Source: Lepidodermella squamata (taxonomy: Eukaryota > Animalia > Gastrotricha). From it: a stretch of 64,000 nucleotides of DNA. The stretch's first letter is position 1; every line of letters starts with the position of its first letter. The stretch lies in NCBI GenBank assembly GCA_047495785.1, contig JBLDXI010000003.1, positions 2,046,001-2,110,000 on the forward strand, given 5' to 3'. Both the position numbers and the translations under genes were made by a program. Positions 2-53,251 of the stretch are shown piece by piece. The notes below the pieces were generated by a model, which saw nothing but the letters and a program-made list of their open reading frames with translations, was not told the DNA's origin and did no database searches.

Positions 2-1960
2 ATTGGATGTAACACTCCTCAGTTAACTACGAATCGGAAAATTTACCCAAACATATTTCGTACGAGAGCTGGGGGCGAGCCTGTAGCTTACCCTCAGCTC
101 CGCTTCATTCGAGAAGTCGGTAAATGGAACAGATTTGGCATCCTTTCTCTTACTGCAAACGTACTAGACTATACCCTTGCGATTCTAACTGAGAAGGAAG
201 CAATGAAGAACGGTTTTGATGTATCCTTCTTCGATATAGTGCTCGATGTTGATAGCTACACAATCCAGCGCCTCAAGACATCTAATTCTCGAGTAACAAT
301 TTTCCAGGTCACTTTGCCGCCTCTAGTAATCAACTTCCTGTGTCAGACCCACAAATTCGGCATGACTGGGCCTAGATACGTATTCATCCTGCTTTACACC
401 GCCTATCTCGAACCAACAAGCTTGCCGTACAGAATAAGCGATGACTGCACGAGAGACATGGTTTACGAACAGCTTCGATATTCATTCTGGATATCATGGG
501 CTGCAGAGACTGATGAGCCAAATCTTAAAACGACCTTGGGTTATAATCTGGTCGAATTCAATCAGCGATTCGATGCTGCGTTGGGCAACAGAGACCGTCC
601 CGCAGATTACGATCGCAGGCTGTTGTGCCATGACTCCGTCCTTCAAGCTGTTGTAGCGCTTGACAATGCTGAGAAGTTGCTGAGGAAATCCGGGCAAACC
701 ATGATTGACTACAAAGCGAGACCCATGGAGCTGATGAAGATCGTGAACACATCAATGGCACAAGTTGAGTTTTCCGGTCTGCGAATCACAAAGTTCAAAT
801 TCTCGCCACGTGTTGAGTTGGATGATGATGTGTACGTTGTCGTGCAGTGGACATTCGAAACGTTGAGACAGGTTCTTTACACATTTCGCCGCACCCCGAA
901 TGGCGAGGTCTACAACTATTCAAGTTACTCCGATAGAAGACTCCTGATAAAGGCTCAATGGTTCACATCGAATAGCTTACCTCCAAGGGACAACTGGGAT
1001 ATCCTTTCCGTGAAAATATTGACGCCTCCCATCTTCACGTGGGTCATGCTAGCATTGTCAGTCATATCTGGCATTGGCCAAGCCGTAGCTTACGTCTTCT
1101 CCGCTATCCATGACTACGGCAGGTCGACGAATACTATGTACAATGGCGCTGGTCAGACGCCAGTAATATTGCGGATATACCCCGATAAAATTATCGTCTT
1201 TATATCCTGTTTAACATTCAATGTATCTGCAGTTCTTTTCGCCATTGGACACGAAACACTTCACATATGCTTAAGTAAGAGGTTTTTCTTGATAACAGCA
1301 CTGGGCTTGGCTCAAGGAGGCCTTTTCGCGCGTCTGATTTTTCATCGATTCTCAAGATCGAGGCCTGGGTTACAGCCGAATCAAATACTTGTTAGATTAC
1401 CTCGATTCATCCTAATTGGAATAATTCTAATATTGATCCTTTCTTGGAGTTATTTTATCCTATGGAGCCTCATCGACTATCCTCAGATTGTTTTGCGGAG
1501 ATCTGAAAATTACGACCCTATCATTGATTTGCTAACAATTAGCGAATACTCGAGCTGCTCTTCCGAAAGCGATTTGATATGGATTTGCGTCATAGTTGCA
1601 ATTCACGGGTCGGTTTTCGTCGTCGGAGCAGTAACAGTCTACGACTTAAGACGAAGTGTTCATCTGGTAGTGAACCCCGATCTCACTCGCGTGAGATTAG
1701 CCCTGGCAAATACGGTGATTTTATACTTTGCTGGCATTCTGCTTTGCGTTGTCCTGTCGTCCTGGCCTCTTGCTCAGTCGATGTGCATTTCTCTGATTTG
1801 TCTCCTCATTTCAATTGCTACTGGTGGAATAGTATTTTCTTTCCGCTTCGGCCTCATTAATTTAGATACTATGAGGAATTCTACGAGCGGGTGGAGAATG
1901 TCAAGCCAATACAATCGTCGCGAAAGCAATTTTGATTTAGCGGGAATGCCAAACAACTGA
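2..1960 (+). CDS. Class C GPCR, GABA-B-like, subfamily A copy A1 (5' end lies outside the window)
   Basis: The frame is open from base 2 (IGCNTPQLTTNRKIYPNIFRTRAGGEP...) into ORF 203..1960. It has VFT motifs, a WFT-x4-PPRD linker and 7 hydrophobic helices. Closely similar to A2. Confidence 0.9.
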   Translation: MGCNTPQLTTNRKIYPNIFRTRAGGEPVAYPQLRFIREVGKWNRFGILSLTANVLDYTLAILTEKEAMKNGFDVSFFDIVLDVDSYTIQRLKTSNSRVTIFQVTLPPLVINFLCQTHKFGMTGPRYVFILLYTAYLEPTSLPYRISDDCTRDMVYEQLRYSFWISWAAETDEPNLKTTLGYNLVEFNQRFDAALGNRDRPADYDRRLLCHDSVLQAVVALDNAEKLLRKSGQTMIDYKARPMELMKIVNTSMAQVEFSGLRITKFKFSPRVELDDDVYVVVQWTFETLRQVLYTFRRTPNGEVYNYSSYSDRRLLIKAQWFTSNSLPPRDNWDILSVKILTPPIFTWVMLALSVISGIGQAVAYVFSAIHDYGRSTNTMYNGAGQTPVILRIYPDKIIVFISCLTFNVSAVLFAIGHETLHICLSKRFFLITALGLAQGGLFARLIFHRFSRSRPGLQPNQILVRLPRFILIGIILILILSWSYFILWSLIDYPQIVLRRSENYDPIIDLLTISEYSSCSSESDLIWICVIVAIHGSVFVVGAVTVYDLRRSVHLVVNPDLTRVRLALANTVILYFAGILLCVVLSSWPLAQSMCISLICLLISIATGGIVFSFRFGLINLDTMRNSTSGWRMSSQYNRRESNFDLAGMPNN

Positions 1961-2856
1961 AATCGTGATTTTGTTTACCAAAAGACCATGCAATCAGTAA
2001 AAATTATGAAATCTTAGGCTCCTCTTTAATTGTCGGACTCTTTTCTTAAAATTAGGAATTTTCAGAGAACATAAGTTAAACTTGCTCCGAAACTTCAAAT
2101 ATTTTTTGATAATTCTTAATTCGATAGGTCTAGAGTACAGTACGTCTGCAATTCTCGTGATAATCAAAGCAAAAAAGTGGCAATGAAGTCGCCATTATTT
2201 TTCAGGAAAATGCTAGTTTGCGTCAAGTTCTGGCAATAGCTGGATTCATGGCAAAAATCATTCTTGGTAACTTGATCTAAGAGAGACCATTTAAAAATTG
2301 CCCCCGATGTTTGACAAGCTGAAACTTGAGAATTCATCGAGTTGGCACAGATCATTGAAAATGAATCTGAAAGTATGGGGTATTCTTCAGCTCGTGTCAT
2401 CTTTCAACTGGAGCATTTTTCATCGCGGTTTCGCTCTTTTGATCACATGCTTTGCAAAGAGCTAAGAATAGGGCGTCACTTTTGAATCACGCTAAACCAC
2501 AATCTGAACTAATTTCAGTAAAACACGCTAATTCCGCAAGCTTCTAGTATTTCCAGCCTTTCGCCCTCTGGAAATATCTTAACCGGTGCTCATTGGCTTC
2601 ATGAGACAGTGATGCTTGAGAAATGCGAATAAGACCTTTAGAGCTATGTCCACTGGGGTCGCGTTATACGGAGCCATTTCTTTGACCCCACAGCATAGAG
2701 CACAGAGCTAAGTCCAGACAAAAAATGAATGCTCACCTACAATAAAACCCAAGCAAGTTTTATTTGATCAAGCTCGGGGGAGTATTGCATTTCATCTGAT
2801 CTCATCCCATCGCGTCACTGAAGTGTCAACTTCCACATCGCTATTCGCCGGGATTA

Positions 2857-5089: not shown

Positions 5090-7438
5090 ATGGATATTCA
5101 GATCGTCCTCGTCCTTATACTAACGTCAGCCTTTATTCCGCTGAGCGATGAAAAGAAGTCTAATGCCCTCTCAATGCTCGTTTTCATACCAATATCTGGA
5201 GATGAACCGAGGATTGGCGAAGCCTGCAAATTGGCCTCACAGCTCGCGATCGACGAAGTGAACAGTAGAGTCGATATCCTACCTGATTATGACATCGACC
5301 CTCTCTATCGCGACGAAGGTCCAGGCGGCTCTCTATCAGCTAGTGTAACGGTCCAGTTTCACCGAGGTTTGGAAAATGAGTCCTATTTCCAAAATACGTC
5401 CTTGCTTAAAAGCCCAGTGATGATAGGACCATTCTATTCTGGAGGCTGCAAGGCTACTTCTCCTATTGTATCGCATCTCTTCATGTCTCACATTGCAATA
5501 GGATGTAACACTCCGCAACTTACAGCGAACAGAGTCATCTATCCTAATATATTCAGGACCCGGGCCGGCGGAGAACCCGTTGTCTTCCCTCAGCTTCACT
5601 TCATTCGAGATGTGGGAAAGTGGAACAGATTTGGCATCCTTTCCCTGACGGCAAACGTTTTGGACTATACACTAGCAATACTCATGGAAAAAGAGGCCCA
5701 GAAAAATGGCTTCAATCTTTCTTTCTTCGACATAGTAATCGACGTCGACAGCCTAGTGGTGCAGGGACTAAAAGATTCTGGAACTCGTGTTACTGTTTTC
5801 CAAGCATCTATGCCACCTCTAGTAATCAAATTCCTGTGTCAGACCCACAAATTCGGCATGACTGGGCCCAGATATGTGTTCATTCTACTCTACACCGCTT
5901 ATCTCGAACCAACAAGCTTGCCGTACAGAATAAGCGATGACTGCACGAGAGACATGGTTTACGAACAGCTTCGATATTCATTCTGGATATCATGGGCTGC
6001 AGAGACCGATGAGCCGAATCTGAAAACGACCTTGGATTATAATCTGGTTGAATTCAATCAGCGATTCGATGCTGCGTTGGGCAACAGAGACCGCCCAGCA
6101 GATTACGATCGCAGGCTGTTGTGTCATGACTCCGTCCTTCAAGCTGTTGTAGCTCTTGACAACGCTGAGAAGTTGTTGAGGAAATCAGGACAAACCATGA
6201 TGGACTACAAAACGAGACCTATAGAGCTCATGAAGATCGTGAATACGTCAATGGCACAGGTTGAGTTTTCGGGTCTGCGAATCTCCAAGTTCAAATTTTC
6301 TCCACGCGTTGAGTTGGATGATGATGTGTACGTAGTCGTGCAGTGGACATTTGATACCTTGCGGCAGGTACTCAGCACTTACCGACGAACTGCAAATTCT
6401 CCTGTCTACAACTACTCAAGCTATTCTGATCGGAGACCTTTAAATGCGCCGCGTTGGTTCACTTCAAACAGATCGCCACCGAAGGATAACTGGAAGGTAT
6501 CGAGAGAAAACATCACTATAAATCGAATTTTCACTTGGCTGATTGTTGCTCTAAGTTTGATATCAAGCACTGTCCAGGTCTTTGCGTATGCTTTCGCAAC
6601 TATTCATGACTATAATCGTATCATGGCCGCCAATGGCGTGAATAAGCGTAGACTTCTCAGAATTCCTCTTGATAAGCTGTTTACTCTAATCGCTTGCATT
6701 TTTTTAAACATGTCTGCTGGACTTTTTGCTGGCGGTGATGAATCCTCGGAAAATTGTTCCGCGAAACGTTTCTTTCTTATAACGGCATTCGGAATCATTC
6801 AAAGTTCGTTATTTGGCCGCTTGCTTCTCCATCGCCGTTCGATGTCAAGAATAGGGGCGAAACCTGTTGATGATCTTCGAAGACAGAATAATTTGTTGAG
6901 CCGAGTCCTTATCTCATCATTAATGTTGTCGTGGACCTATTTCCTAATTTGGCTCCTCGCCAAACCGGTAGAATATTTGATAAGGACATCGGAAACGTAT
7001 GATCCAATGGCTGATGTGCTTACAATAAGCGAGCACAGTTACTGCTCATCACCCAGTGATTTAATACTTCTAGGCTTCATTTGCGTAATTCACGGCATTT
7101 TATTCATTTTCGGCGCTTTCAACATCTACGAACTGGGTAGGATACCGCACCTGGCCAGTAATCCGGAGATCAATAGAGTAAGGTTAGCTCTAGCTAACAC
7201 CACAATCTTATACTTTGCCTGTGTTATGATTTGCGTTGTACTCGGCGCTTGGCCTATAGCTCAATCAATTTGCATATCAGTCATTTGTCTGCTGATTTCC
7301 GCAGCAACTAGTGCGATAATTTTCTCTTTGCGATTATCGAATAGCATCCCAGCTGTATTTAGGTTACAACGGCAAGTTGGTCGCATTATTGGCAATATTG
7401 ATTTTACTATTGTGAACAAAGCAATAAGGCGATTTTAA
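5090..7438 (+). CDS. Class C GPCR, GABA-B-like, copy A2 (782 aa, intronless)
   Basis: Signal peptide. GEACKLASQLAIDEVNSRVDILPDY closely matches GABA-B1 [25 protein letters not shown]. Also YPNIFRT, FLC..HKFGMTG.RY and WFTSNRSPPKD motifs, 7 TM, no Cys-rich domain. Confidence 0.93.
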   Translation: MDIQIVLVLILTSAFIPLSDEKKSNALSMLVFIPISGDEPRIGEACKLASQLAIDEVNSRVDILPDYDIDPLYRDEGPGGSLSASVTVQFHRGLENESYFQNTSLLKSPVMIGPFYSGGCKATSPIVSHLFMSHIAIGCNTPQLTANRVIYPNIFRTRAGGEPVVFPQLHFIRDVGKWNRFGILSLTANVLDYTLAILMEKEAQKNGFNLSFFDIVIDVDSLVVQGLKDSGTRVTVFQASMPPLVIKFLCQTHKFGMTGPRYVFILLYTAYLEPTSLPYRISDDCTRDMVYEQLRYSFWISWAAETDEPNLKTTLDYNLVEFNQRFDAALGNRDRPADYDRRLLCHDSVLQAVVALDNAEKLLRKSGQTMMDYKTRPIELMKIVNTSMAQVEFSGLRISKFKFSPRVELDDDVYVVVQWTFDTLRQVLSTYRRTANSPVYNYSSYSDRRPLNAPRWFTSNRSPPKDNWKVSRENITINRIFTWLIVALSLISSTVQVFAYAFATIHDYNRIMAANGVNKRRLLRIPLDKLFTLIACIFLNMSAGLFAGGDESSENCSAKRFFLITAFGIIQSSLFGRLLLHRRSMSRIGAKPVDDLRRQNNLLSRVLISSLMLSWTYFLIWLLAKPVEYLIRTSETYDPMADVLTISEHSYCSSPSDLILLGFICVIHGILFIFGAFNIYELGRIPHLASNPEINRVRLALANTTILYFACVMICVVLGAWPIAQSICISVICLLISAATSAIIFSLRLSNSIPAVFRLQRQVGRIIGNIDFTIVNKAIRRF

Positions 7439-7637: not shown

Positions 7638-10091
7638 TTAGATTGGTGCTTGCGATTTGTGAGGCAGAAAGGAGCCGTGGCGGTCAATCGGTGCAACTAC
7701 GGACGGACGTCTGAGATCAACAGCTGTAATCGTCGATGAATCCGCCGAAATCGATGACTCTCCACGACAGAAAAGACTGATCTGAATAACACCAGTGATC
7801 AAAATTAAGGTAGAAGAAATCGCAATAAGTTGGGAAATAGGGTTCGTAAGTATAGCAACCACGAAAATGCAAGTCAGAAACAGCATCGAGGTGTTGAAAT
7901 GTGCTAAGCTAACTGAAACTTGAAAAGAAGTTTTTTCCACACTTTTGAGTGATATGAGGACGATAAGCTCAGTAAAGATAATGAATCCATTGATACCAAC
8001 CGCAATCGAAATGAAAATGCTTTCGAACTCGGAATTGCAGGAAAAACTGTTGTAACTGTAAAACACATCAGAGGCTTCATCGTAAAACGAAATGGTGTGA
8101 TCCCACGAGAGATTTCTCTGGTGATACGGCTGAGAAATCGCAAGCCAGATAATCAGGAAAACAATTGCCAGACTGAAAGATGCTATTGATGAAGTGATAA
8201 GGATTGATTTAGGACTTCTTGCCGTCGTTGCAGCGCGAGACTGAGTTCTTGAATGATGAGAGTTTGCTCTTTTCCTCTGACCCGCATTCGATAGAGTTCG
8301 TCGTCTTTTGTTGTAAACAGACATAGGTTTCATCGTTAGATCATGTCTTGTTCTGCTGAATCTTTGTTTTGATAGAGCTATCAGATTCATTATGAATGGC
8401 CCTTGAAGCAAGGAGAAGCCCAAAATGATAAATATCCTCTGGCACATGCAAATTGCAGCATTACCCGAATTAACGATAGGATACGCGTAGATAACACTTG
8501 AAATGTTGAGAAGGATGGTTCCCGCCATTAGAATGCCACCACAAACACAATACATGAATCTTTCCTCATGTTCCAATGGGTCACTTTTCAAAAGGTTTCG
8601 CCATGTTCCTGCCACGCTGATAACTGTGATGAACGATGCTATTCCGAAAACCGACCAGAAGAAGCCAACAGGAATTGAGACGGACGCTACCTCAATTACA
8701 CGTGAATCCAACGGAGGCTTTTTGTCGCGGGTAAACCATAGCGGTTCATCGTTTTTTCGAGAAAAGTAGCTTGAAAAAGAGTAAGCCGAGTAGTTACCTC
8801 CCTTCAGGTTGTAAGAGTAAAGGGTCTTTCTACCTGTTGCTTGAGTCCATTGAATAGCAACTTGAAGGTCATCATCAAGCTCTAGTCTTTTCGAATATTT
8901 GAACCTGCCAACTCTCAGGCCAATGAAGTCACTTTCAGCGATAGAGTTGTTCACGACCTTCATTACGTCACCGGGTTTTGATTGATAGTCACTGAGAGTA
9001 AGGTTAAGGGACTTCAACTGTTTCTCAGCCCGATCAAGAGCTAACACAGCTTCAAGGACCGTATCATGACAAGGAGCTCTTCTATCGAAATCTGCGGGAA
9101 TTACATTACCAGACCCCTTCATGAATTCAGCATCGAACTCAGGCAGGTTATAGCCCAAAGACGTTATCGAAGCTACGTCTTCATTCGTTGCAGACATTGC
9201 GATCCAAAAAGATATCTTCAGTTGTTCGTAGACCATCTCCCGGGTACATCCAGGTAGAACGATAGAGCCAAGCCCAGATGGCTCGAAATACGACCCATAA
9301 TACAGAATGAAGCTGTATCTACCCCCAGTAATTCCGTATTTGTAAGTTAGACATAGAAATTTCAGAATTAGCTGGAGCATTGAGATATCGAGAGCGACTA
9401 CTCGGACGTCGGTTTGTTTCATAGCGATAATCACTGCATCTGTGACATCTGCTACAACGTCGAAGTAAACAACGTGGAAACCGTTGTTTTGAGCTTCATT
9501 GACTAAAGTCGTAGCCATTGTTGTATCGAAAACGTTGTTTGCATTGGTGAGAATGCCAAATTTGTTCCATTTACCGACTTCTCGCATGAAAAGGAGTTGC
9601 GGATAGGAGATGAGCTCTGCTGAAACTCGGGTGCGGTACAAATTGGGGTAACGCTTTCGATTTGCAGTTAGCAGTGGAGTTCCACATCCTATAGTAAGTT
9701 CAATCATGTTGAGATGGTGAACAAAACCACCCAAAGCCACGCATCCACCTGAAGAATAGGGTCCAATCATTATAGGAGACATCACGGAGTCAGTGCTCTT
9801 CTTCGCCTCGAAGGAATTGCGAAAATCAGTCGTTTTCTTTATTGCTTGGCTACTCTGAGGTCCTTCATCTTGAATGATCATTTTGACGCGGTAGTCTGGC
9901 AGGATTTCCGTTCGAGAGTTGATTTTATCTATAACCATCTGACAGGCGAGTCGGCAGCCGGTACCATTTCTCGGCTCGTCACCTGTTATTGGAAGTAGTA
10001 CAAGCATCGATATCTCTTTTAGCTTCGTCTCTTCAGCTGAAGCGAGCAATACGACAAGCGAGAATATTAAGTGCAAGGTTTGGATTGTCAT
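7638..10091 (-). CDS. Class C GPCR, GABA-B-like, copy A3 (intronless; likely start MTIQTL at 10091)
   Basis: ORF 7638..10184; the signal peptide begins at the ATG at 10091. PITGDEPR, DEGP, YPNLYRTR and CHD motifs, 7 TM, long basic ICL2. Confidence 0.92.
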   Translation of the reverse strand: MTIQTLHLIFSLVVLLASAEETKLKEISMLVLLPITGDEPRNGTGCRLACQMVIDKINSRTEILPDYRVKMIIQDEGPQSSQAIKKTTDFRNSFEAKKSTDSVMSPIMIGPYSSGGCVALGGFVHHLNMIELTIGCGTPLLTANRKRYPNLYRTRVSAELISYPQLLFMREVGKWNKFGILTNANNVFDTTMATTLVNEAQNNGFHVVYFDVVADVTDAVIIAMKQTDVRVVALDISMLQLILKFLCLTYKYGITGGRYSFILYYGSYFEPSGLGSIVLPGCTREMVYEQLKISFWIAMSATNEDVASITSLGYNLPEFDAEFMKGSGNVIPADFDRRAPCHDTVLEAVLALDRAEKQLKSLNLTLSDYQSKPGDVMKVVNNSIAESDFIGLRVGRFKYSKRLELDDDLQVAIQWTQATGRKTLYSYNLKGGNYSAYSFSSYFSRKNDEPLWFTRDKKPPLDSRVIEVASVSIPVGFFWSVFGIASFITVISVAGTWRNLLKSDPLEHEERFMYCVCGGILMAGTILLNISSVIYAYPIVNSGNAAICMCQRIFIILGFSLLQGPFIMNLIALSKQRFSRTRHDLTMKPMSVYNKRRRTLSNAGQRKRANSHHSRTQSRAATTARSPKSILITSSIASFSLAIVFLIIWLAISQPYHQRNLSWDHTISFYDEASDVFYSYNSFSCNSEFESIFISIAVGINGFIIFTELIVLISLKSVEKTSFQVSVSLAHFNTSMLFLTCIFVVAILTNPISQLIAISSTLILITGVIQISLFCRGESSISADSSTITAVDLRRPSVVAPIDRHGSFLPHKSQAPI

Positions 10092-11251: not shown

Positions 11252-13555
11252 TTACAGTTTTTTTACATCGAATAGACTCAGGGAAATAGAAATCAACAAC
11301 GCAGCAACAGAAATCGTCATAAGCTGTGCGATGGGGTTATTCAAAATAGAAATGACAGCAAATGCTGCCGTGAACAGCATAGCTGTGTTGAAGACTCGAA
11401 GCAGCATTCTCTTATATCGCCGAGTTTTAATAACGTGCTTTTGTGAGTAGAAGCAAATCAGCAAGAGCGCGAAAAGCAGAACTTGCAGGCAGCAGAAAAC
11501 GCCCACTACTAGTCCTTCAAATTTGCTTTTACACATGAAGCTGAGCTGCTCAGTATATACATCAGAATTGAAGTTATAGAAAGAATTAATAAGATCCCAG
11601 GAAACATTTTGTGAAAACGTGGGGGAAGATAAAATCAACCATGCAGCAAGAAGTGCTGCTGAAGAGACGCAAAAAATCAGAGTAGCTATCAAGGTTGACT
11701 GTTGAAGATGCACGAGGATTTCATCCTCAATTTCTCGAGCTAGATCTTTGTTCACTACTTCTTCCGTCCAGCTGCTGCTTCTAAAAGATTTTCGGCCAAG
11801 ACTGGTCCGAGCATTAGTCGTAAGCCGTGACCTGAACTTGGTGAGTGTGAATTTGGTTTTGCTCATCAAATACTCGCGAAGATTGCCGAAGAATACTCCT
11901 TGGATCATACTGATACCCACGACGAGCAAAACTCGTTGCAAGTAGCAGAAAACTACCCATGAATTTTCAAAAGCAGGTGTTGAGAAAATGACTGCTGAAA
12001 CGTTAAGCAACAAACATGCCGAGGTAATTACGACGCTATCGATTGGAAAAGCCGGCGTTCGATGTAAGAAAAACAGCCGAAGCTTCAGACCAAGAGCGAT
12101 GATGTTCAAAACAGTCGCGAAGACTGTTGTTACAAGGATGAAATAGTGAAATTCCTGAGACACTGTCGTAAGTCGCGAAACTGTTTGTTTACGATCCCGC
12201 GGGGGCTTGCCAGTTTCAGTAAACCAAATAGGCGTCTGCAACACTTTTGTCACGTAGCTGCTTGAGTTGTAAGCTGAATTTTCATCGTTGAGTGCAAACG
12301 TGACAAGAACATTGCGTCCAGTTTTCGGGGTCCACTGAACAGCAACTTGGACATCGCCGTCCACCTCTAAACGAGCAGAATAATGAAGAGGACCAATTCT
12401 CAAGCCAACGAAATCAGTTTTCGAAATCGATTGATTAATCTCCTTGATAACAGCATCAGGTTTTGTGGAGTAGCTAGACAACGAGAGATTTGAAAGCGCC
12501 AATATCTTTTCCGCAGAATCCAGGGCTAAAACAGCTTGCAGAGCAGTGTCAAAGCATGAGGCCCTCTTATCGAAGTCTGCAGGTATCTTCCCAGCCGAGT
12601 AATTCAGGAATTTTGCATCAAACTCTTTGAGATCAAACCCGAGTGAAGATTTCATAGTGACGTTCTCATTGGAGGAAGCCATTGCCAGCCAGAATGAGTA
12701 TTTGAGTTGTTCATGAACAATCTCTTTCGAACACCCTATTACTCCCGTTGGAGCAATGTTAGCCGGTTCAAAGTATGATCCGTATAGCAGGAGGAATGCA
12801 TACCTTCCCCCAGTCATTCCCAACTTATGCGTGAAGCATAAGAATTTCATGATTAGCGGTGGTCCAGACGCTTCGAGGGCTATAACCCGGCTGTCGGAGT
12901 CTTTCAAGGTTGAAATGACTTGTTCTGTTATATCTGGAACGCTGTCGAAGTACGAGACCTCAAAATTGTACAGCAACGCCTCCTGAAGTAGAATTGTTGC
13001 TAGAGTATAGTCGAAAACATTGTTGGCGTTCGTCAAGATTCCGAAACGCTTCCAACCCCCGATTTCCTCGAGAAAATGAAGTTGAGGAAATGCAACCAGC
13101 TCCGTAGAAATTCGAGTGCGGTAAAGATTCGGATATCTTGCCCGATTTGAAGTCAACTGAGGAGTTCCACATCCAATAACGATTTGAGCCATGTTCAAAT
13201 GGTGGATACCCCTCCCAAGGGTTAGGCATCCCGAAGAGAAGAATGGACCGATAATGACTGGAGATATCAAACTCTCTTGTTCAGTTCTTTTGATATCGAC
13301 TGCGTGGCGAGTACTTAGAACGCCCTGAGGTCCTTCGTCTTTGAACACAGGGGTGATTTGATAGTTTGGTAGGATGTCGCTCCTGGAATTGACCTCATCG
13401 AAGACAATTTGGCTAGCGATTCGGCATGCTTGACCGTTTCTCGGCTCATCGCCAGTTATCGGAATCAGAACAAGCATCGACATATTGAATGGCTTTTCCG
13501 CTTCCACCAAGTGAGCCAAGCCAATAAGGACAGAAATCGTAGTGAAAAAAGACAT
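11252..13555 (-). CDS. Class C GPCR, GABA-B-like, copy A4 (767 aa, intronless)
   Basis: Signal peptide, PITGDEPRNGQAC, VFT motifs, 7 TM. Most similar to A3. Confidence 0.93.
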   Translation of the reverse strand: MSFFTTISVLIGLAHLVEAEKPFNMSMLVLIPITGDEPRNGQACRIASQIVFDEVNSRSDILPNYQITPVFKDEGPQGVLSTRHAVDIKRTEQESLISPVIIGPFFSSGCLTLGRGIHHLNMAQIVIGCGTPQLTSNRARYPNLYRTRISTELVAFPQLHFLEEIGGWKRFGILTNANNVFDYTLATILLQEALLYNFEVSYFDSVPDITEQVISTLKDSDSRVIALEASGPPLIMKFLCFTHKLGMTGGRYAFLLLYGSYFEPANIAPTGVIGCSKEIVHEQLKYSFWLAMASSNENVTMKSSLGFDLKEFDAKFLNYSAGKIPADFDKRASCFDTALQAVLALDSAEKILALSNLSLSSYSTKPDAVIKEINQSISKTDFVGLRIGPLHYSARLEVDGDVQVAVQWTPKTGRNVLVTFALNDENSAYNSSSYVTKVLQTPIWFTETGKPPRDRKQTVSRLTTVSQEFHYFILVTTVFATVLNIIALGLKLRLFFLHRTPAFPIDSVVITSACLLLNVSAVIFSTPAFENSWVVFCYLQRVLLVVGISMIQGVFFGNLREYLMSKTKFTLTKFRSRLTTNARTSLGRKSFRSSSWTEEVVNKDLAREIEDEILVHLQQSTLIATLIFCVSSAALLAAWLILSSPTFSQNVSWDLINSFYNFNSDVYTEQLSFMCKSKFEGLVVGVFCCLQVLLFALLLICFYSQKHVIKTRRYKRMLLRVFNTAMLFTAAFAVISILNNPIAQLMTISVAALLISISLSLFDVKKL

Positions 13556-37382: not shown

Positions 37383-39782
37383 CTACGATTGCTCCACATT
37401 CTTTCGGTGAGTGAATAGGATAACGCTAGCGCATATCGATGTAACTGAAGTGAAGCAAGACAGCGCAATGGATTGACTAGCGGGCGAATTTCTGAGTAAA
37501 GCTACGACAAGCACGCAAGCCAGGAGAAGGGTCGTCAAATTGATAGTGGCAAGTCTGATTCTCACGAGATCCTTGTAGACTCTAACCTGCTGGCTGTTAC
37601 GAAGTGAGTAGCTGATAATTGAACTGAGCACCAGGAGAAGTGCATGGATGAGCGAAGGAACAATTACCCACGCTGTTTCAAAGCTGGAGCGGCACACAAA
37701 AGTATATACGATATGCAGGGTGTCTGTTTCTAGGTCATAATCCCCGCCAGGGTTTGTCAGCTCAGTTCGCTGCAGAAAGGGAGAATCAACCGTAAACCAG
37801 ATTGCAAGGTAGACTATGGTTAATATAGTGATTACGAAGAACCCTGCGAGAAACACAAGTTTCCGCTTTCGAATATAACGCTTAGGGTCGAGATTTTTCT
37901 TCCTTTCCGAAATTTGACTGTTCGCCGGTGATGCCGAAGTGGGCACGTTTTTACGACCTCTAGTTCCGAATCGCTTTCTTGACATCTTGATAGTCCCAGT
38001 AGTTTTGAAACTTGAACTGCTTTCATCAGGTACAATGCTGAAAGTTCCGATTGAGTAGTGGAATAAAAGCCTGATAAAGGTCTGGTTTTGAAGGAGTGTG
38101 ATGCCTAGTATAGGAAGGATTCTCTCGGCGAAGCAGTAAAGCTTTGACGTAAAATTGTCTGCCGGCAAAGCGAAGATGATCGCGGCAGAGTCAAGGGAGA
38201 TGCAACCCATCAACGACGTGATGGTGTCCCATGGGTAACCAAAGTTCCTAGTTCTGTCACCGGCAAAAACCTCGTTGAAAATACCTCGAAATGACGCAAT
38301 TTTGAAAACGAAAGTCGAACAAGACAACGCGACAATGAACCAAAGGAATGCTATGGGAACAGACTTGTTTTCAATGCTGAGAGACCATTTATCTTTCGGA
38401 GGTAGTCCATTCGAAGTGAACCATGTGGGCTCGGCAATAAATTTTCTAATTCTATAGCTGTCCATGTTGAAAACGGAATCGCCCTCTTTTGGTTTGATGA
38501 ACATCAGAAATTGGCGTTTCTTTTCAGGAGTCCATTAAGCCACAACATAAGTTTCGTCATCATGCTCACCTCTTGCTGAATACTGAAAATTTCCAGCAGT
38601 TCTGAGGCCTTTGTAGACTGTCTTGAAAACAGTTTCATTCAACACCCTCATAATCAACCTCGGCGTTATTTTGTAGTTTCTCAGCGATGTGTTGTGTTCT
38701 TCTTTTAGAATAGCTTCAGTGGCATTAAGAACTAACGCAGCTTGAAGGGCGGAATCGTGGCATATCGCTCGCTTCTCATAGTCGAGAAGGACAGTAGCAT
38801 TAGTCCCGACGTATTCGTTGAAAATGTCCGTGAACTTGGTGTAGTTATAGTTAAGCGTCGAAATCTCGCTAGGTTCGTCCGTCTCAGAAGTAGCGGCCAC
38901 CCAAAATGTGTACTTCATCTGTTCTCTAACGACCGCTTTCGAGCAGTTGGGCATCGGCATGTCGGCTAGATTGTCCGGGTTGAAGTACGAGCCGTAATTC
39001 ATCATGAATGCGTATTTGGGACCGGTCATTCCTGCTTTATAGGCGACGCACAAAAATCTGATCAATTGGGTCGACGAGCTAACAAAAACCACCCGGGTGT
39101 CTGTCTTAATCAAGTCAGAAATCGCATTATCGTCAAAATCGGTAACAAATCCGAGGTAAGAAACTTCGAAGCCATTGCGATTTGCTTCTGTTGACATGTA
39201 TAACGCCATATCGTAATCGAATGCGCTTGTTGCATCGGCTAGAATTCCAAAACGCTGCCATTTCCCATAGTCTCGCATGAATCTGAGCTGAGCATACGAC
39301 AAAAGTCTGCCAATTCCTCTTAATTTGTACAAGTTTGGGTATCGATCTCTTTTTGCCTCTAGGAGAGGACTGATACAACCAGTGGCAGTGTGCACCATAT
39401 TGAGATGATGAAGTTGAGTTCCCCCAGAAACACAGCCAGGAGTATACCATCCCCCTATCATGAATGGGGATTGATACACCCGACTGTTTGGTGGTTGTTC
39501 TTCGAATTTTCGCACGAAATCAACCGTTGCTTTTGGCACGTTGCGCCCGAGTATCCCTTCATCGACGAAATAGGCTTCGATACTGAATTCCGGCAGAATG
39601 TCCATCCTTCGATTAACCTCTCTGAAGACCAACTCAGTTGCAGCCATGCAGGACAGCCCTTTCCGCGGTTCGTCCCCGGTCATTGGTATTATAACCATAA
39701 CTTGCAATGAATTACTTTGTCCCATGTCTCCTTGGCCCATGGTAGATATAACCAGAGCGAGAATTAAAAATGCTGAAAGCAT
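37383..39782 (-). pseudogene. Class C GPCR copy A8 with a single in-frame premature TAA (38537-38535)
   Basis: ORFs 38535..39782 and 37383..38504 are in the same frame. It reads YVVA*WTPE where paralogues have YVVVQWTPE. No other lesion seen. Confidence 0.8.
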
Positions 39783-43132: not shown

Positions 43133-45448
43133 CTATTGATCTGCAGACTGAACTTTGTTTCCTTCCCAGAAAAGAATCACACCAGTCATGCAAGAAATTA
43201 GGAGGGAAAACGATCCGAGCGCTATTCGTTGTTGCAAAAATTGCGAATTCAGTAGAACCGCAATTAAAACGCAGCCGAAAAGCAGAGTCGTAACGTTAAC
43301 CACGGCTAATCTGATATTTCGCAAGTCAGAATACGATTGGTGTTCGTCACTGTTTCTCAGGCTGAATGATAGGCAAGTAGAAATACCGAATAGAGCCAAA
43401 TGAATTGCAGTTATAACGAAAATCCATATCGTGTCGAAGTTGGATTTGCATACGTTAATTGTCACTATATTATAGCTATCAGTTTCATTGTTGTAGTTAC
43501 CCGTCTTAGCAGTTACGAACTCTATTGCTGAATGTGGTTGGTCATACAAGAACCAAATCAAAAGATATGCAATGGTAAGAACCGATGTAGCGATCAAGCT
43601 AATGATGAAATGAAGTTTGAGCTTCTTTCTTGGGAGTAATGAAGCAATCAATGTATTCTGCGGTCCTACTGAGTTCACACTTGAGATTGAAAACCCTTTA
43701 GCCATTTCGGACCTCATAACCGTGGCTCTTGTGCTTCTGTAATACCGATGTACCTCACGAGGCTGCCGATAGTGGAATAAGAGACGGGTGAAAAACTGAT
43801 TGTGATAGAGCCCGAGGCCAACAGCTGGAATTAACCGCTCGAAAATGCAGAGAAAGTTCGATTCTTCAGTCATCATCATGAGAATACCGCTGACATTCAA
43901 AAAACAGCTTCCAAGAACGAAGGCAAGTCTATCTATTGCAACGCCAACCTTTCCAACCTTTCCTATGAAACTGACAAGCTGGAAAATCGAGTTCGCCACT
44001 GCTATCGCGATTGCTGAGTAGAAGCCCGCATTTCCCACCCCAGCTTGCTCTGTAATTGTAAGCCATTTGTCACGAGGCGAAGTTTTTTCCGGTGTGAACC
44101 ACGCAGGCGAATTTTCTCGAATCGTAATGCGATAGCTTGAGAGGTTGTAAAAAGAAGAGCCATCCAGCGGTTTTATGTAGACGAGGGTGCGGCGTTTCAA
44201 CTCAGGTGTCCATTGCACGACTACGTAAGTTTCATCGTCATGCTCAGCTCGCGAAGAAAATTCAAATTTCCCACCGGTTCGAAGCCCGACAAACTCAGCT
44301 TTTGCCACAGACATATTTACTACGGAAGAGATAAGGTCTGGACTATTCTGGTAATCCATTAGGCTCATGTTGCGCATCTGTTTAATAGTTTCCTCGGCGC
44401 CGTGTAGGGCAAACGCTGTAATAAGAGCTGAGTCATGGCACAAGGGTCGTTTGTCGAGGTCGGACAACGATGCACTCATATTTCCGACAAATCCCTCGAA
44501 AATAGCATTAAATTGATTCAAATTATACCCTAGGGATGAATTGGCTGAAGGATTCTCAGTGGCAGTCGCAAGACCAACCCAATAGGTAATCCTTACTTGC
44601 TCCCGCACCATATCTCTCGTGCATTCAGGCATAACGATTTCAGCCAATCTATCAGAGTCTGTGAATGAACTTGTGTTGATGATGAAAACATAACGCGACC
44701 CTCTGATTCCGAATTTGAAGGCCTGACAGAAGAATTTGAGCATAAGTGGTCCCACGCTAACCACAAAAACTCGCGTGTCTCGCTCCAACAATTCAGCCAT
44801 AACCTGATCGTCAACATCTACAACACTGTTGAAGTAGGAAATTTCGAAATTTAGTTTAACAGCTTCGTTGTAGAGAAATATAGCCAGGGTGTAGTCGAAC
44901 AAGTTACTTGCTCCGGTCAGAATCCCGAATCGCCTCCATCTGCCGATGCTTTCGATAAAACTGAGTTGAGCGTAGCCTGCCAACTCGCCAGTTCCTCTTA
45001 GACGATACAAGTTCGGGTACAAATCACGCCTAGCCGTTAATTGAGGAGCAGTGCCTCCCATAGCTACTTGGACAAAGTTCAATTGGTGTATGAAGGTCGC
45101 CATAGCTTTGACTCCAGGTGTGAACCAGCCTCCGATGAGAATAGGGGATACAAGTGTCGATGAGTTCTGGAAGCTTCGATAGAAAGTCACAGTCGACCTA
45201 GTCATCAGTTGGCCATTAGCTCCTTCATCCATGAAAACTGGTTCAAGTTTAAAGCTTGGCAAAATATCGCTGCGGCGGTTGACAAGGTCGAAAACCACCT
45301 CGACAGCAGCTCGACATGCCAGGCCTCGTCTTGGCTCATCACCGGTGAAGGGGATGAAAACACCAACCTGTAAACTCGTCTTTTTCTCAAATGCACTCAA
45401 AAGTCGAAGTTGAAGAAGAGCAAAAATTGCTGTATTTATTGACTTCAT
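43133..45448 (-). CDS. Class C GPCR, GABA-B-like, copy A9 (771 aa, intronless)
   Basis: Signal peptide, PFTGDEPRRGLAC, YPNLYRLRGTGEL and AEHDDETYVVVQWTP motifs, 7 TM. Confidence 0.93.
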   Translation of the reverse strand: MKSINTAIFALLQLRLLSAFEKKTSLQVGVFIPFTGDEPRRGLACRAAVEVVFDLVNRRSDILPSFKLEPVFMDEGANGQLMTRSTVTFYRSFQNSSTLVSPILIGGWFTPGVKAMATFIHQLNFVQVAMGGTAPQLTARRDLYPNLYRLRGTGELAGYAQLSFIESIGRWRRFGILTGASNLFDYTLAIFLYNEAVKLNFEISYFNSVVDVDDQVMAELLERDTRVFVVSVGPLMLKFFCQAFKFGIRGSRYVFIINTSSFTDSDRLAEIVMPECTRDMVREQVRITYWVGLATATENPSANSSLGYNLNQFNAIFEGFVGNMSASLSDLDKRPLCHDSALITAFALHGAEETIKQMRNMSLMDYQNSPDLISSVVNMSVAKAEFVGLRTGGKFEFSSRAEHDDETYVVVQWTPELKRRTLVYIKPLDGSSFYNLSSYRITIRENSPAWFTPEKTSPRDKWLTITEQAGVGNAGFYSAIAIAVANSIFQLVSFIGKVGKVGVAIDRLAFVLGSCFLNVSGILMMMTEESNFLCIFERLIPAVGLGLYHNQFFTRLLFHYRQPREVHRYYRSTRATVMRSEMAKGFSISSVNSVGPQNTLIASLLPRKKLKLHFIISLIATSVLTIAYLLIWFLYDQPHSAIEFVTAKTGNYNNETDSYNIVTINVCKSNFDTIWIFVITAIHLALFGISTCLSFSLRNSDEHQSYSDLRNIRLAVVNVTTLLFGCVLIAVLLNSQFLQQRIALGSFSLLISCMTGVILFWEGNKVQSADQ

Positions 45449-45863: not shown

Positions 45864-48697
45864 CTAATGCGGAAACGCGGCATATGACAATCTCGCAGCG
45901 CTGAGTCTCGGCATACTCATTCGACTCATTCGACTCATTCTGAACGCCTCTTCCTGAGGCGACATCGCGTTATTTCGTTGAATTAGCTACGAAATGAAAC
46001 AACGTACATAATCATCCAAGTTTTGTAAAAAAATAAAACTAACCTTATTTACGTAGTAGGAAATCGGTTGAACAAGACTGATGAACAGCGAGATAAAAGC
46101 ATAAACCATGGTCGATTTTTCGATATCCGAAGCATATATCACGCCTCCAACGAGTATCGCAAAAAATAATAGTGACATGGCTAATCCAAAGATAAGCGCG
46201 ATTTCGCCAACTTGGCTGTTATACTTAGCAACACGGTCCTGATGGGATATCAGATAATTATGAATAAATTCAAGGTAAAATAATGAAAAATTACAGATTT
46301 CAGCTTGAGACAACTCATAAGACTTCTTAGCATTAGACATCCATCAAAAATTGCGATGATTGCGATAACGGACAGTGTCACCTCGCTATCGGATTTTACT
46401 AAGCATTCTGTGGCGACAGTGCGGAATTCGATGCTGATATCATGAGCCGCAACTTCAGCTGTTCGAAGTATATCAACGGCTTGTAATGGGTCAACAGTCA
46501 TCCAAACAACTAGCAAGGTCGATTGAAGACAAAGCCAAGTCAAAATAAAACTGAACCGAATTTTCGGATTTTTCCCCCGTTTCAAGAGATTACATCGAAG
46601 TGTTTCAAGTTGGAAAGCGATGCCAACGACAATCAAAGTGAGTCCAGTTGCCAACAGTGCATACGCCATAGAGCAAGATACAACTACTTGATGAGAGATT
46701 GTTCCAGGGATAGCAAAAATATGACAGGCCAAGACCACTTGACCAACAGAGATTATATAAAATGGCTTGGAGTGTATGTCAACTTCGATGTCATCATCTT
46801 TCAAATGAACAGCAACGTGAAATATGTTAAGAATGATGACAAGTGTTGCCATTCCGATTAGGACCCAGTAGACAACTTGGTTGACCATTGGTACTTGTTG
46901 AATGACTATTTTTAGGGAATCTAAAGGGGGCCTTCCATCATGCGTTCTCCAATTGACATCGCCCGTTTCTGCCAGAAAAAATGACGTGTTGGCCTTCCGA
47001 ATAACCAATATGTTCACTGCCTTTATACCATAGGCAATGGGAGATCCGTCTACCCCAATCGTTTCATTTGTTCTCTGTAGCTGGTGGAAAGTGAAAGGGA
47101 GTAGGCCGAACCTATTCCCTCCATTCTGGGGGTCCAACTCGAAATCTCCGCCAAGGCTGCGAAATTTGAGTTTTGGCATCGTCCGAACCATCAGATCGTG
47201 AAGAACCCTGCCACTCAATCGATTTTTCTCCCCGCCCACCAGCCAATTAGCTATGGTGTCATTTGCCATGTTAAGCTCGAATTCTGTTTGATTTAACCAG
47301 AAGACTGCAGCCGTGACCATGTCATAGCAATGAAGACGCCAACCGCGCCAAACCGCGCTTCTCTCCGGGTTGTTGATTGCCTCGCCGATAAACTTACTGA
47401 ACTGAGCACCGCTGATTCCTAATGAATCTGTATAGGACGCCCCATATGCTGATAAGGCTGACGAAGATCCGTAGAATAGGCAGCTTTCTAGAACCTGGGC
47501 AAGCATCTCCTCTGTGCACCATGGGAATCTAGACGGATCTGATGGAGTGATATCATTGATTGGTTGAAGAAAGAACACATATCCAGGTCCATAGATGCCG
47601 TAGCTGTAAAGGAGGCAAGCCAGCTTAGCGAAGTAGTTGCTATTGATGAAAATGATCCGTGCGTTCATCCGCTTGATTTCCCCCACTGCTATTGCCATCT
47701 CCGAACCGTCAACCGGAACTCCGGGAATGAAAATTACCTTGGCGATGCCAATAATTGTCATGTTGTTCTGGGCTACAACCTGTTGCAAGGTGTTTTCGGG
47801 CTGAGGAAAGAAGGTTATTTATACATTTTCTGCAAATTCGAAGTAATACCTGATCCCACGTTGAGGTTGCTTCAGAAAGAATTGCTATCTTCTTCCAGCC
47901 AAACATTTTGCAAGCTTCAACTATGCGAATTGCACTGGTTGCGTAAGGGGATAGAACGAAGTAGTCATAGAAGTTTTTCCTTGCCAAGTACAACGGCTGG
48001 TATGCTGTGCTTTTCGTAAGCTTGATAAATGATCAAATGGGATACAGTTAAATACCCATGTGTCGTCCTTATTTTGCTCATGAATCTTTTACTTAATTCT
48101 TTAAGGATCTTTACTTTCTAGTCTGATTGCGAATTCATGTTAGGGCAAACAAGTCACTTGGTAATAAAGTTAAAACTACGCCTCTTTCAATCAAGAAATG
48201 GCCATAAGTAATAAGGAAGCTTCGGATAACATACCCCTGTGTAGTTATACTGCTTGAGCATCGATGCTGTATACATGTGCCCAGCGCATGGACTGCCCAA
48301 AATGAGCGGGACTCGATTCGACCCAGGAATTTCCATTGCGGTGATGAATTTTTTTACATGAACTGGCCTTGAACACTAAATTTTGGTATGTTTTAAATTG
48401 CTAATTTGTCACAAATGTAACCTCATCGTCGATTACTTCGATCTGAATGTTGTATTGCGGTAACAGATTTGTGTTTGAACGGATGCCATTCAATGCAAGA
48501 CGCATGGATTCGGTGCATATCGGGCCGATTGGATACAGAAATCCACCGTAATTTACAATAACAGGAATGCTGATATTTTTTCGGTTTCCGTCTGCTTTGT
48601 AATCCGCCTCTACTTTCAGAGGTGGTGGGTTCGTCATGTTGAGCTTGGAAAGCGCTGTTCTTATAACGCTAAGCAGTAGCAAGATCGGAATAAGCAT
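45864..48697 (-). CDS. Class C GPCR, GABA-B-like, subfamily B copy B1 (803 aa; exons 48697-48422, 48375-48235, 48020-47850, 47800-46295, 46238-46044, 45986-45864)
   Basis: Five phase-0 GT-AG introns give one continuous frame. NLLPQYNI, DDECS, FGWKKIA, ARIIF, HCYD and WRTHDGRPPLD motifs; 7 TM. Confidence 0.88.
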
Positions 48698-48780
48698 TTT
48701 TTATGGACAATTTGATTTTTATCAATACTCGTGCATCAGTTGTAGATTTCGAAACTTGAAATGTAATTGGATAGTCTTGA

Positions 48781-50614: not shown

Positions 50615-53251
50615 TTAACGCCTCTTATTACTGCGGGGTTGCTTATTTCGTTGAATTAGCTATGGGAAAAAGATAATTAGAACATCATCCATAGTCTTGT
50701 CAAAAATATCGAACCTTAGTGACGAAGTGGGAGATCGGCTGAACAAGGCTGATGAACAACGAGATGAAACCTATAACTGTCGTCGATTTTTCGATATCCG
50801 AAGCAAATATTACGACCCCAACGAGGGTCGCAAAAAATATGAGTGAAACGGTTAATCCAAAGGTAAGCACAATTTCACCAACTTGGCTTTTGTGCTTAGC
50901 AACGCGGTCCTGTTTAGAAAAAGTTAAACATAAAGTAGTTCAAGGTTAAATAATAATTTGTAAAATTACAGATTTCAGCTTGATGCAACTCATTAGACTT
51001 CTAAGCATTAGAAACCCATCAAGAATTGCGATGATTGCTATAACGGACAGCGTCAGCTTGCTATCGGATTTCACTGAGCATTCTGTCGCGACTGTGCGGA
51101 TTTCGATGCTGATAGCCGCAACTTCAGCTGTTTGAAGATTATCAACCGCTTGTAGAGGGTCAGTAGTCAGCCATATAATCAGTAAAATTGACTGCAGGAA
51201 AAGCCACGTCACAATGAATCTAGACCTAATTTTCGGCTGTTTGACTCTTTTCAAGAGATTACTGCGAAGTATTTCAAGTTGGAAAGTGATCCCGACGACA
51301 AGCAGGGTAAGGCCGGTTGCCAGCAGCGCATACGAGATCGAGCAAGATATAACAACTGAATGGGAAATCGTTCCGGGGATTGCAAATATATGGCAGGCTG
51401 AAACCACTTGGCCAACAGTGATCAGATAAAATGGAGTGAAGTTAATGGCTCTCTTTTTCAAAACACTTTGGGAATGTACGCCCACGACGATATTATTCTC
51501 CTTGAGATTAGCAGTCGCGTGCAAAATGTTCAGAATGATTACAACGATTGCTAACCCGATTAAGACCCAGTAGACAACTTGGTTGACCATTGGGACTTTT
51601 TGAATGATAATTATGATGGAATCCAAAGGAGGTTTCCCATTGTGCGTTCTCCAATTGGCATCGCCCGTTTCCGCCAAAATAAATGACGTTTCCCTTGTAC
51701 TCTTTTGAACGACTAGGACGTTGACTGGCTTTATACCGTAGGCAATGGGAGCCCCGTCTGCCCCAATTGTTTCATTTGTTCTCTGAAGTTGGTAGAAGGT
51801 GAAAGGCATGAGGCCAAACTTGTTTCCTCCATTCTGAGGATCCAACTCAAAATCCCCGCCGAGGGTGCGAAATTTAACTTTCGGCATTGTCCGAACCATT
51901 AGATCGTGAAGAACCCTACCGCTCAATCGATTTTTCTCCCCGCCCACCAGCCAATTAGCTATGGTGTCATTCGCCATGTTGAGTTCAAACTCAGTTTGAT
52001 TAAGCCAAAATACAGCGGCGGTGAGCATATCATAGCAATGAAGACGCCAACCCCGCCAAACTGCGCTTTTCTCAGGACTATCGATTGTCTCGCCGAGAAA
52101 CGTACTGAACTGAGAACCGGTGATTCCTAAAGAATCAGTGTAAGACGCTCCATATGCAGATAAAGCTGATGAAGTTCCGTAGAATAGGCAACTCTCCAGA
52201 ACCTGGGCAAGCATTTCTTCTGAGCACCAGGAAAATCGAGACGGATCTGTTGGAGTTATGTCGTTGACAGGTGGTGAAAAGAACACAAAGCCAGGCCCGT
52301 AGATACCATATCTGTGAAGGAGGCAAGCCAGCTTAGCGAAATAGTTGCTGCTGATGTAAATGATTCGTGCGTTCATGCGTTTGATTTCTCCCACTGCTAC
52401 TGCCATTTCCGAACCATCAACTGGAACTCCAGGGATGAAGATTACCTTGGCTGTGCCGATAATTGTCATATTGTTCTGGGCTGCAACTTGCTGAAAGGTT
52501 TTTTCCGGCTGGGGCAAAAAAACAATTAAACCTATTTTCCGGACATTCGAAGCAATGTACCTGATCCCACGTTGAGGTTGCTTCAGAAAGAATTGCCACC
52601 TTCTTCCAACCAAACATTTTGCAAGCTTCAACTATGCGAGATGCGGTGGTTGTGTAAGGGGATAGAATAAAGTAGTCGTAGTAGTTTTTCCTTGTCAAGT
52701 ACAAGGGCAAGTATCCCGTACTTTTTGTGAGCTTGAAAAGACGCATTTGTGTGACGTTGTGTAAAATAAATTATAGGAAGGCTTACCCCAGTGTAGTTAT
52801 ATTGCTTCAGCATTGATGCTGTATACATGTGACCAGCGCATGGACTGCCCATAATGAGCGGGACTCGATTCGACCCGGGAATTTCCATTGCATCGATGAA
52901 TTTTTTAACATGAACTGGCCTTGAGCACTATATTTCTATCTTAAGTAATGAAAACTGTAATGAACCTATGATTACCTCATCGTCGATTACTTCGATCTGA
53001 ATGTTGTATTGCGGTAACAGATTCTTGTTGGACCGAATGCCATTCAAAGCAAGACGCATGGATTCGGTACATATCGGTCCGATAGGATACAGAAATCCGC
53101 CGTAATTCACAAAAGCAGGAATGCTGATATTTCTACGGTTCTCGCCTGCTTTGTAATCAGCCTCTACTTTCAAAGGTGGTGGGTCCGTCATGCTGAGCTT
53201 GGGATATGATGTTTGTACAACACCAAGCAGCATTAAGAACGATTTAAGCAT
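50615..53251 (-). CDS. Class C GPCR, GABA-B-like, copy B2 (exons 53251-52976, 52927-52787, 52731-52561, 52508-50970, 50909-50715, 50659-50615)
   Basis: Same exon/intron structure as B1 and high similarity; shorter C-tail LIQRNKQPRSNKRR*. Confidence 0.88.

Follow-up and report, generated by a model that had tools for sequence, protein, structure and literature searches.

Organization of the receptor gene cluster

The stretch of DNA analysed here, called the window below, is a 64,000 nt segment of Lepidodermella squamata contig JBLDXI010000003.1 with a GC content of ~0.42 and 17 open reading frames (ORFs) of at least 200 aa. It contains a cluster of genes for class C receptors which combine a Venus-flytrap domain with a seven-transmembrane (7TM) domain and resemble the metabotropic receptors for γ-aminobutyric acid (GABA-B receptors) in their architecture. 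Eleven such genes, modelled as members of one superfamily, are located within 53 kb; nine of these are of A-type (g01 to g09) and two are of B-type (B1 and B2). All eleven are located where the original prediction had placed them, and Pfam matches, searches with hidden Markov models (HMMs) and gene models agree on this. The set of genes was therefore right, but the ends of B1 and B2 had to be moved, to 45864 and 50615. The genes are listed below, with E-values for the Pfam families ANF_receptor and 7tm_3.

g01 (A1), 2..1960, plus strand: A-type; ~136 N-terminal residues lie beyond the window edge.
g02 (A2), 5090..7438, plus strand: intact, intronless, 782 aa; signal peptide, flytrap and 7TM domain; ANF_receptor 3.4e-18, 7tm_3 7.7e-08.
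g03 (A3), 7638..10091, minus strand: intact, intronless; ANF_receptor 4.7e-22; sister to g04.
g04 (A4), 11252..13555, minus strand: intact, intronless, 767 aa; ANF_receptor 2.2e-19.
g05 (A5), 14852..17314, minus strand: two exons; spliced ORF of 801 aa with no stop.
g06 (A6), 18193..20637, minus strand: two exons.
g07 (A7), 34358..36625, minus strand: intact, intronless; ANF_receptor 7.6e-21.
g08 (A8), 37383..39782, minus strand: one nonsense codon; the flytrap ORF matches ANF_receptor and the 7TM ORF matches 7tm_3.
g09 (A9), 43133..45448, minus strand: intact, intronless, 771 aa; ANF_receptor 2.4e-18; groups with g07 and g08.
B1, 45864..48697, minus strand: 803 aa; exons 48697-48422, 48375-48235, 48020-47850, 47800-46295, 46238-46044 and 45986-45864.
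B2, 50615..53251, minus strand: 788 aa; exons 53251-52976, 52927-52787, 52731-52561, 52508-50970, 50909-50715 and 50659-50615.

Ten of the eleven reading frames are open, with lengths of 750–800 codons, and only g08 is disabled. This agrees with the prediction of one disabled gene in the array. The lesion is a single TAA at 38535-38537, where all paralogues have Gln, and both halves of the gene are otherwise open. A hydrophobic signal peptide is encoded at the start of all complete A genes, and each of them contains seven hydrophobic segments; the likely start of g03 is the Met at 10091, which is placed ahead of the signal peptide. The incomplete g01 also shows seven hydrophobic segments, and its tblastn alignment with g02 spans residues 137–772 of the latter with 68% identity. 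The array had been expected to continue past base 1; of its genes, only g01 is shown to run past it. A search of six-frame fragments of the window with the A-gene HMM returned the 11 known genes and no further copy or relic.

The genes had also been described as mostly intronless. The A genes do have few introns or none; however, g05 and g06 are each interrupted by one tiny intron and B1 and B2 consist of six exons each. The intron of g05 (57 nt, phase 0, GT-AG, 17182-17126) contains an apparent in-frame stop, and the possibility that g05 is a second pseudogene was rejected once this intron had been mapped around the stop. The homologous intron of g06 (51 nt, 20502-20452) happens to read through in frame. 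The introns of this genome are tiny and can either leave the frame open, as in g06, or mimic a premature stop, as in g05. The introns of B1 and B2 are of the GT-AG type, leave an open frame and are 46–60 nt long, except for one of 214 nt. Exon 5, which follows the long ORF on its downstream side, encodes the last two transmembrane segments (TM6-TM7) of both proteins, and an interpretation of B1 and B2 as truncated receptors with five transmembrane segments was rejected once the introns had been mapped. Altogether, 12 introns were mapped (in g05, g06, B1 and B2); all are GT-AG and frame-keeping, and 11 of the 12 fall within 46–60 nt. Read contigs were mapped only over positions 14800-20700, the region of g05 and g06. 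The mapped contigs showed no splice joints for the introns of these two genes, only assembler artefacts ('opposite strands'), so that both introns rest on sequence and homology.

Domain architecture and family placement

ANF_receptor (PF01094) is found in the A-type ORFs wherever the N-terminal half is present. The E-values range from 1e-15 to 1e-22 in g02, g03, g04, g07, g08 and g09, and the matches are weaker in g05 (7.3e-05, under the Pfam cut-off) and g06 (2.6e-07). The flytrap of B1 and B2 is matched only through the A-family HMM (E 1e-21 to 1e-27; 7e-27 for B1) and through metagenome relatives which bear PF01094. Matches to 7tm_3 are weak in g02, g05, g06 and the 3' ORF of g08 (28.7–43.5 bits, with a cut-off of 33.5), and the remaining receptor genes have no Pfam match to this family. 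As expected of class C receptors, a flytrap domain is followed by a 7tm_3-type 7TM domain in which a cysteine of TM3 is paired with one of the second extracellular loop (ECL2). Cys556 and Cys652 of g02 are nearly invariant, and the TM3 and ECL2 cysteines are conserved together with the disulfide pair in lobe 2 of the flytrap.

The Cys-rich domain, which had been reported as absent from the array, is indeed missing: Pfam scans gave no NCD3G match and the ~28-residue linker of g02 contains no cysteine. The flytrap is thus joined directly to the 7TM domain, which is the architecture of GABA-B receptors. With g02 alone, the best sequence match in the PDB is GABBR1, over the full length (E 2.9e-20). 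At E<1e-3, the profile of the A genes matches only GABBR1 (6e-43), Drosophila GABA-B R1, GABBR2 and GPR156 in the PDB, with no match to mGluR, CaSR or T1R at this threshold, and it aligns TM4-TM7 with those of GABBR1 and GPR156. When the AlphaFold2 model of g02 (mean predicted local distance difference test score 70.6) was compared with the PDB using Foldseek, the first 27 matches were GABA-B chains (E 4e-29 to 1e-17), matched over the full length, and mGlu and CaSR came after them with a template-modelling score of ~0.31. Because of these profile and fold matches, together with the lack of NCD3G and of stalk cysteines, the architecture and the nearest known relatives of the family are GABA-B-like.

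A Pro-Lys motif in TM7, of the type FxPKxY, is typical of class C receptors. At the position of Phe-Val-Pro-Lys in GABBR1, where the confidence of our alignment is moderate, Pro-Lys is kept only in g07. The C-terminal coiled coil and the endoplasmic reticulum-retention signal by which GB1 and GB2 are forced to assemble as a heterodimer are likewise missing; Pfam scans gave no GBR2_CC match, and the C-terminal tails extend only ~5–45 residues past TM7. The second intracellular loop (ICL2, between TM3 and TM4) of g03 to g09 carries a variable insert of 45–65 residues which is rich in basic residues and Ser (alignment columns ~610–670). This insert is absent from g01 and g02.

Relationships within the cluster and to relatives elsewhere

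The nearest relatives of the genes are their neighbours, in the groups already proposed from the window (A1/A2, A3/A4, A5/A6, A7-A9 and B1/B2), and both BLASTP identity and two trees support this. All-against-all BLASTP gives 65% identity for g01/g02 and for g05/g06, 42% for g03/g04 and 38–47% among g07, g08 and g09. B1 and B2 are 79% identical over the ORFs of the large exon and 81% over exons 1–4, and identity between A-type and B-type is ~20%. The trees, calculated with FastTree (126 rows) and with an IQ-TREE mixture model (44 rows), are both unrooted and without an mGluR/CaSR outgroup. Each of the neighbour groups is recovered in both with support of 97–100, and g01 is sister to g02 with support of 100. 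The nine A genes form a clade with one metagenome protein (support 99). This clade is nested in a superclade which otherwise contains metagenome proteins only (support 99), and all named GABBR-like proteins fall outside it. The two B-type genes join three further metagenome proteins with support of 98, in the part of the unrooted trees that contains the canonical receptors.

An exhaustive profile search yielded 1015 representatives at E<1e-3, of which ~45 are far stronger than the others (1e-141 to 1e-44). A word-index homology search returned essentially nothing for g02 alone and one weak match for the alignment of the A genes. The strong matches that were looked up all come from ENA metagenome assemblies and are 25–33% identical to the window genes. 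After these in rank come named GABBR1/2-like proteins from Haliotis, Xenopus, Macrostomum, Montipora, Lineus and Glandiceps. Contigs carrying the metagenome relatives also bear compact animal genes, including those for an activin receptor, TAF1, collagen IV, astacin and MST kinase. Taken together, these comparisons support the A genes as a deep, separate, lineage-specific clade. That they stand apart from canonical GABBR1/2 and from the chemoreceptors derived from CaSR/mGluR had been proposed earlier, and the profile, fold and tree results agree with it.

The ENA scaffolds concerned (ERZ23486764, ERZ23486787 and ERZ27332993) represent a compact animal genome with more than 40 clusters of superclade receptors at 50% identity. 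Two superclade receptor genes are adjacent on one metagenome scaffold (L004:10001-16166).

GABA-contact residues and the ligand pocket

The residues that contact GABA are, in GB1b numbering, Trp65, Ser130, Gly151, Ser153, His170, Tyr250, Trp278 and Glu349 (PMC6429233; bioRxiv 10.1101/621060). The numbering was checked on Xenopus GABBR1, in which the spacing matches GB1b exactly. In the canonical GABBR1 clade, which ranges from flatworm to frog, none of the eight contacts (W-S-G-S-H-Y-W-E) is lost in any row. In the nine A genes, the His170 position is invariably Arg and the Glu349 position is Lys or Arg. At the Tyr250 position the residues vary, most of them being small (Leu, Met, Gly, Ala, Ser or Val), and at that of Trp278 there is either a small residue or a gap. 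The Trp65 position falls within a conserved Thr-Gly-Asp-Glu-Pro-Arg (TGDEPR) motif. All of the side-chain contacts kept by a functional GB1-type GABA receptor are replaced, and B1 and B2 likewise lack the GABA contacts.

Because every side-chain contact is replaced, GABA is probably not the ligand; the products of these genes are probably not GABA receptors, and canonical GABA/baclofen pharmacology would be unlikely for them. The exchange of the GABA-contacting Glu for Lys or Arg and of His for Arg makes the predicted pocket basic, which suggests an acidic or anionic class of ligand. Column entropy among the nine A genes places the Tyr250 position in the 94th percentile and the Ser153 position in the 77th, and the positions of Trp65 and His170 are invariant. 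Of the seven pocket positions compared in these nine sequences, two are highly variable and three are fixed or nearly so.

Selection, gene conversion and domain asymmetry

The ratio of nonsynonymous to synonymous substitution rates (dN/dS), calculated pairwise by the Nei-Gojobori method, is 0.127 for g01/g02, 0.155 for g05/g06 and 0.129 for B1/B2. Values of 0.13–0.16 in these young pairs indicate purifying selection, and the genes are therefore functional. In sliding windows, dS is saturated or undefined over most of g01/g02 and of g05/g06. It drops within one part of g01/g02:

5768..6290, plus strand: approximate tract of gene conversion between g01 and g02; g02 residues ~227–400, in flytrap lobe 2; dS 0.2–0.5.

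In g05/g06, dS falls to 0.1–0.5 at g06 residues ~92–150 and ~643–733. B1/B2 show an even dS of ~0.74. Tracts of low dS such as these are the mark that gene conversion leaves on old duplicates located next to each other.

The two halves of the A-type receptors differ in their conservation. Mean pairwise identity among the A genes is 46% in the flytrap against 26% in the 7TM domain, and in g01/g02 the corresponding values are 89% and 51%. Outside the conversion tracts, dN of the 7TM domain is still two to three times that of the flytrap. The same comparison (flytrap/7TM) gives 50%/36% in the canonical GABBR1 clade, 34%/39% in other named GABBR-like proteins and 25%/17% in the metagenome superclade.

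Read evidence from the g05-g06 region

Coverage of this region by a DNA run of the same organism is even across genes and spacers, with two haplotype contigs that are up to ~9% apart. In an older run, which is probably RNA (at least 99% identical), depth is low over the coding region of g06 and over the 3' end of g05, and the spacer between the two genes is hardly covered. This run gives weak evidence for transcription of g06. At 15497-15892, two DNA contigs are present, of which one is identical to the window and the other differs from it at 37 of 396 bases; such a pair indicates either very divergent haplotypes or a collapsed paralogue.

A constrained orphan family as the probable explanation, and its alternatives

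We consider it probable that the cluster represents an orphan family of GABA-B architecture which multiplied by tandem duplication, is kept under constraint, undergoes gene conversion between neighbours, binds a ligand other than GABA and works as a flytrap-driven dimer. The cluster would be one of those formed by a family of orphan class C receptors that is large, old and lineage-specific, each receptor being built of a signal peptide, a Venus flytrap, a short Cys-free stalk and a 7TM domain with almost no C-terminal tail. Its genes originated from ancient tandem duplication and are maintained by purifying selection, with neighbouring copies partly homogenised through gene conversion, and g08 has been inactivated recently by its nonsense codon. 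The receptors presumably act as dimers, as other class C receptors do. In such a dimer, the flytrap would close on a small extracellular ligand and the signal would run from the flytrap through the stalk and the ECL2 hairpin into the 7TM domain. It is possible that the conserved Arg at the His170 position and the Lys or Arg at the Glu349 position form a shared anchor for acidic or anionic ligands, and that the variable residues equivalent to Ser153 and Tyr250 tune specificity.

Several observations weigh against this interpretation. The 7TM domain is very divergent, with the low mean identity given above and with 7tm_3 at or below the cut-off in most genes, and the loss of the TM7 Pro-Lys in eight of the nine A genes means that coupling to G proteins is not assured. 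The comparison of pocket columns, with seven positions in nine sequences, is suggestive only, and the alignment near the Ser130 position is unstable between methods. The family placement also has to be read with care. The original prediction was of an independent expansion of the GABA-B branch; the lineage-specific tandem expansion and the GABA-B architecture stand, but 'GABA-B branch' here denotes the nearest known relatives, since the trees are unrooted and lack the mGluR/CaSR outgroup.

It is plausible, though less likely than not, that the genes are a repertoire of environmental chemoreceptors, in which each gene serves one external cue and is expressed sparsely in sensory cells, as are V2R/OlfC and T1R. 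A large, tandem, lineage-specific family (11 genes in the window and the more than 40 clusters at 50% identity in the metagenome relative) with one fresh pseudogene, g08, has the appearance of such a repertoire; the GABA contacts have been lost, and variability at the Tyr250 and Ser153 positions of the pocket is among the highest of all columns. However, if a family diversifies mainly so as to recognise many ligands, its greatest variation is expected in the flytrap. In the A family the flytrap is the conserved half instead, both on average and in g01/g02, and a simple chemoreceptor model therefore fits poorly. Three pocket positions which are invariant or nearly so in the nine A genes, the low dN/dS, and whole-organism contigs of probable RNA that show g06 only at low depth also speak against it. 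The asymmetry fits better with a shared class of ligand and a 7TM domain which either evolves fast or depends on a partner.

Dependence on a partner leads to a reading that we regard as unlikely, namely that the A-type proteins are ligand-binding subunits which, like GB1, do not signal alone and rely on one shared partner whose 7TM domain is competent, of B-type or of canonical GB2-like type, in the manner of GB1/GB2 or T1R1,2/T1R3. Their conserved flytrap and loose 7TM domain resemble the canonical GABBR1 clade and not the other GABBR-like proteins, eight of the nine have lost the TM7 Pro-Lys, and two B-type genes, which are nearer to the canonical receptors in the unrooted trees, are present in the same cluster. 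On the other hand, human GB1 retains the TM7 motif, the short tails of the A-type proteins contain neither a coiled coil nor a retention signal, and the baseline comparison involves few sequences. We would also treat as improbable, to a like degree, a broader scheme in which the A-type proteins are interchangeable ligand-binding subunits of a combinatorial, GABA-B-derived chemoreceptor system. In that scheme, acidic ligands, for example organic acids or acidic amino acids, would be anchored by the basic pocket. Specificity would depend on a few variable residues of the pocket, and a shared partner, perhaps of B-type, would signal.

The constrained orphan family is set against two further readings, both of which were rejected. 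It is very unlikely that the genes are genuine metabotropic GABA receptors which have merely been multiplied, as the sponge name 'mGABA receptor' implies. GABBR1 and GABBR2 are the best sequence and fold matches, but the equivalents of Trp65, His170, Tyr250, Trp278 and Glu349 are all lost, with the amine-binding Glu turned into Lys or Arg, whereas the canonical clade keeps every contact from flatworm to frog. A decaying cluster of relaxed or dead duplicates without function, to which the nonsense codon of g08 and the very divergent 7TM domains could point, is scarcely credible given the open frames of ten genes, the 12 frame-keeping GT-AG introns and a dN/dS of 0.13–0.16.

Comparison with known receptor families

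Among receptors of known structure, GABBR1 and GABBR2 (human 7CA3, 7C7S and 6W2Y; Drosophila 9JR0) and GPR156 are most like the window genes. They share the succession of flytrap, short stalk and 7TM domain without a Cys-rich domain, they keep the lobe-2 disulfide and the TM3-ECL2 cysteines, and they are the best profile and fold matches. However, the window genes are only 16–18% identical to them in structural alignments. In contrast to GABBR1/2, the window genes lack the GABA side-chain contacts and the coiled-coil tail, have mostly lost the TM7 Pro-Lys and, in g03 to g09, bear the basic ICL2 insert of 45–65 residues. They are also intronless or nearly so and arranged in tandem arrays, whereas GABBR1/2 are one or two conserved genes.

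The array had been put forward as a novel kind of repertoire, and this was too strong a claim since tandem expansions of GABA-B type are published for sponges. Ephydatia muelleri has more than 120 metabotropic GABA-type receptor genes, with tandem clusters of which one contains more than 50 (PMC7385117). Receptors of GABA-B type have expanded in sponges of three classes, and conservation of their pocket residues is poor (bioRxiv 10.1101/120998); 'sponge-specific' Glutamate-family receptors have been described in Amphimedon (PMC4302439). The sponge expansions, which also include Tethya wilhelma, are tandem GABA-B-type expansions of the same kind as that in the window. The window family is a new, unannotated clade produced by this kind of expansion. 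Its genes have metagenome proteins (25–33% identical) as their closest relatives, and no named sponge protein occurs among the profile-search matches whose names were looked up.

V2R/OlfC and T1R are also class C flytrap receptors that have multiplied in tandem through birth and death, and T1Rs use a shared partner subunit. They differ from the window genes in belonging to the CaSR/mGluR branch and in having a Cys-rich domain, and in the window genes it is the flytrap, not the 7TM domain, that is the better conserved half. The Grl receptors of Dictyostelium, a non-animal multigene family which is GABA-B-like and outside the canonical receptor pair, can be likened to the window genes by description only.

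If the receptors serve external or metabolic chemical sensing, class C chemoreception would have arisen here from the GABA-B rather than the CaSR/mGluR branch. If the combinatorial scheme described above holds, class C chemosensation would have been invented independently of T1R and V2R in an animal lineage that has been little studied. For ligand discovery, the genes provide a natural set of related flytraps whose pocket is basic and rewired. Automatic annotation would label them 'GABA-B receptor subunit-like' despite the loss of the GABA-binding residues, and counts of 'GABA receptors' in such genomes tell little about GABA signalling.

Flanks and neighbouring genes

Beyond the dense cluster, positions 53300-64000 form a gene-poor flank in which GC drops to 0.37–0.39. 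No gene-like ORF of at least 70 aa is present there, and the one ORF that was scanned (57901-58383) has no Pfam match. An Rfam scan of the window gave no match. Three unrelated genes, together with an ORF that weakly matches a SUEL-type lectin domain, are located among the receptors:

21241-21633, plus strand: ORF with a SUEL-type lectin domain; weak (E 6.6e-5, under the Pfam cut-off).
22181-28542, minus strand: multi-exon gene for a TRP-type channel; ankyrin-repeat ORFs at 24119-24967, 25224-25586, 26509-27207, 27348-27857 and 27988-28542, and a weak Ion_trans ORF at 22827-23612.
31163-33964, plus strand: NB-ARC-ankyrin gene; single ORF of 933 aa with a weak NB-ARC match (E 1.7e-4) and, after it, at least seven stretches of ankyrin repeats.
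41991-42668, minus strand: ORF for a trypsin-like serine protease (Pfam Trypsin, 8.7e-34), between g08 and g09.

The NB-ARC-ankyrin protein has no homologue by word-index search, and its gene is arranged tail to tail with g07.

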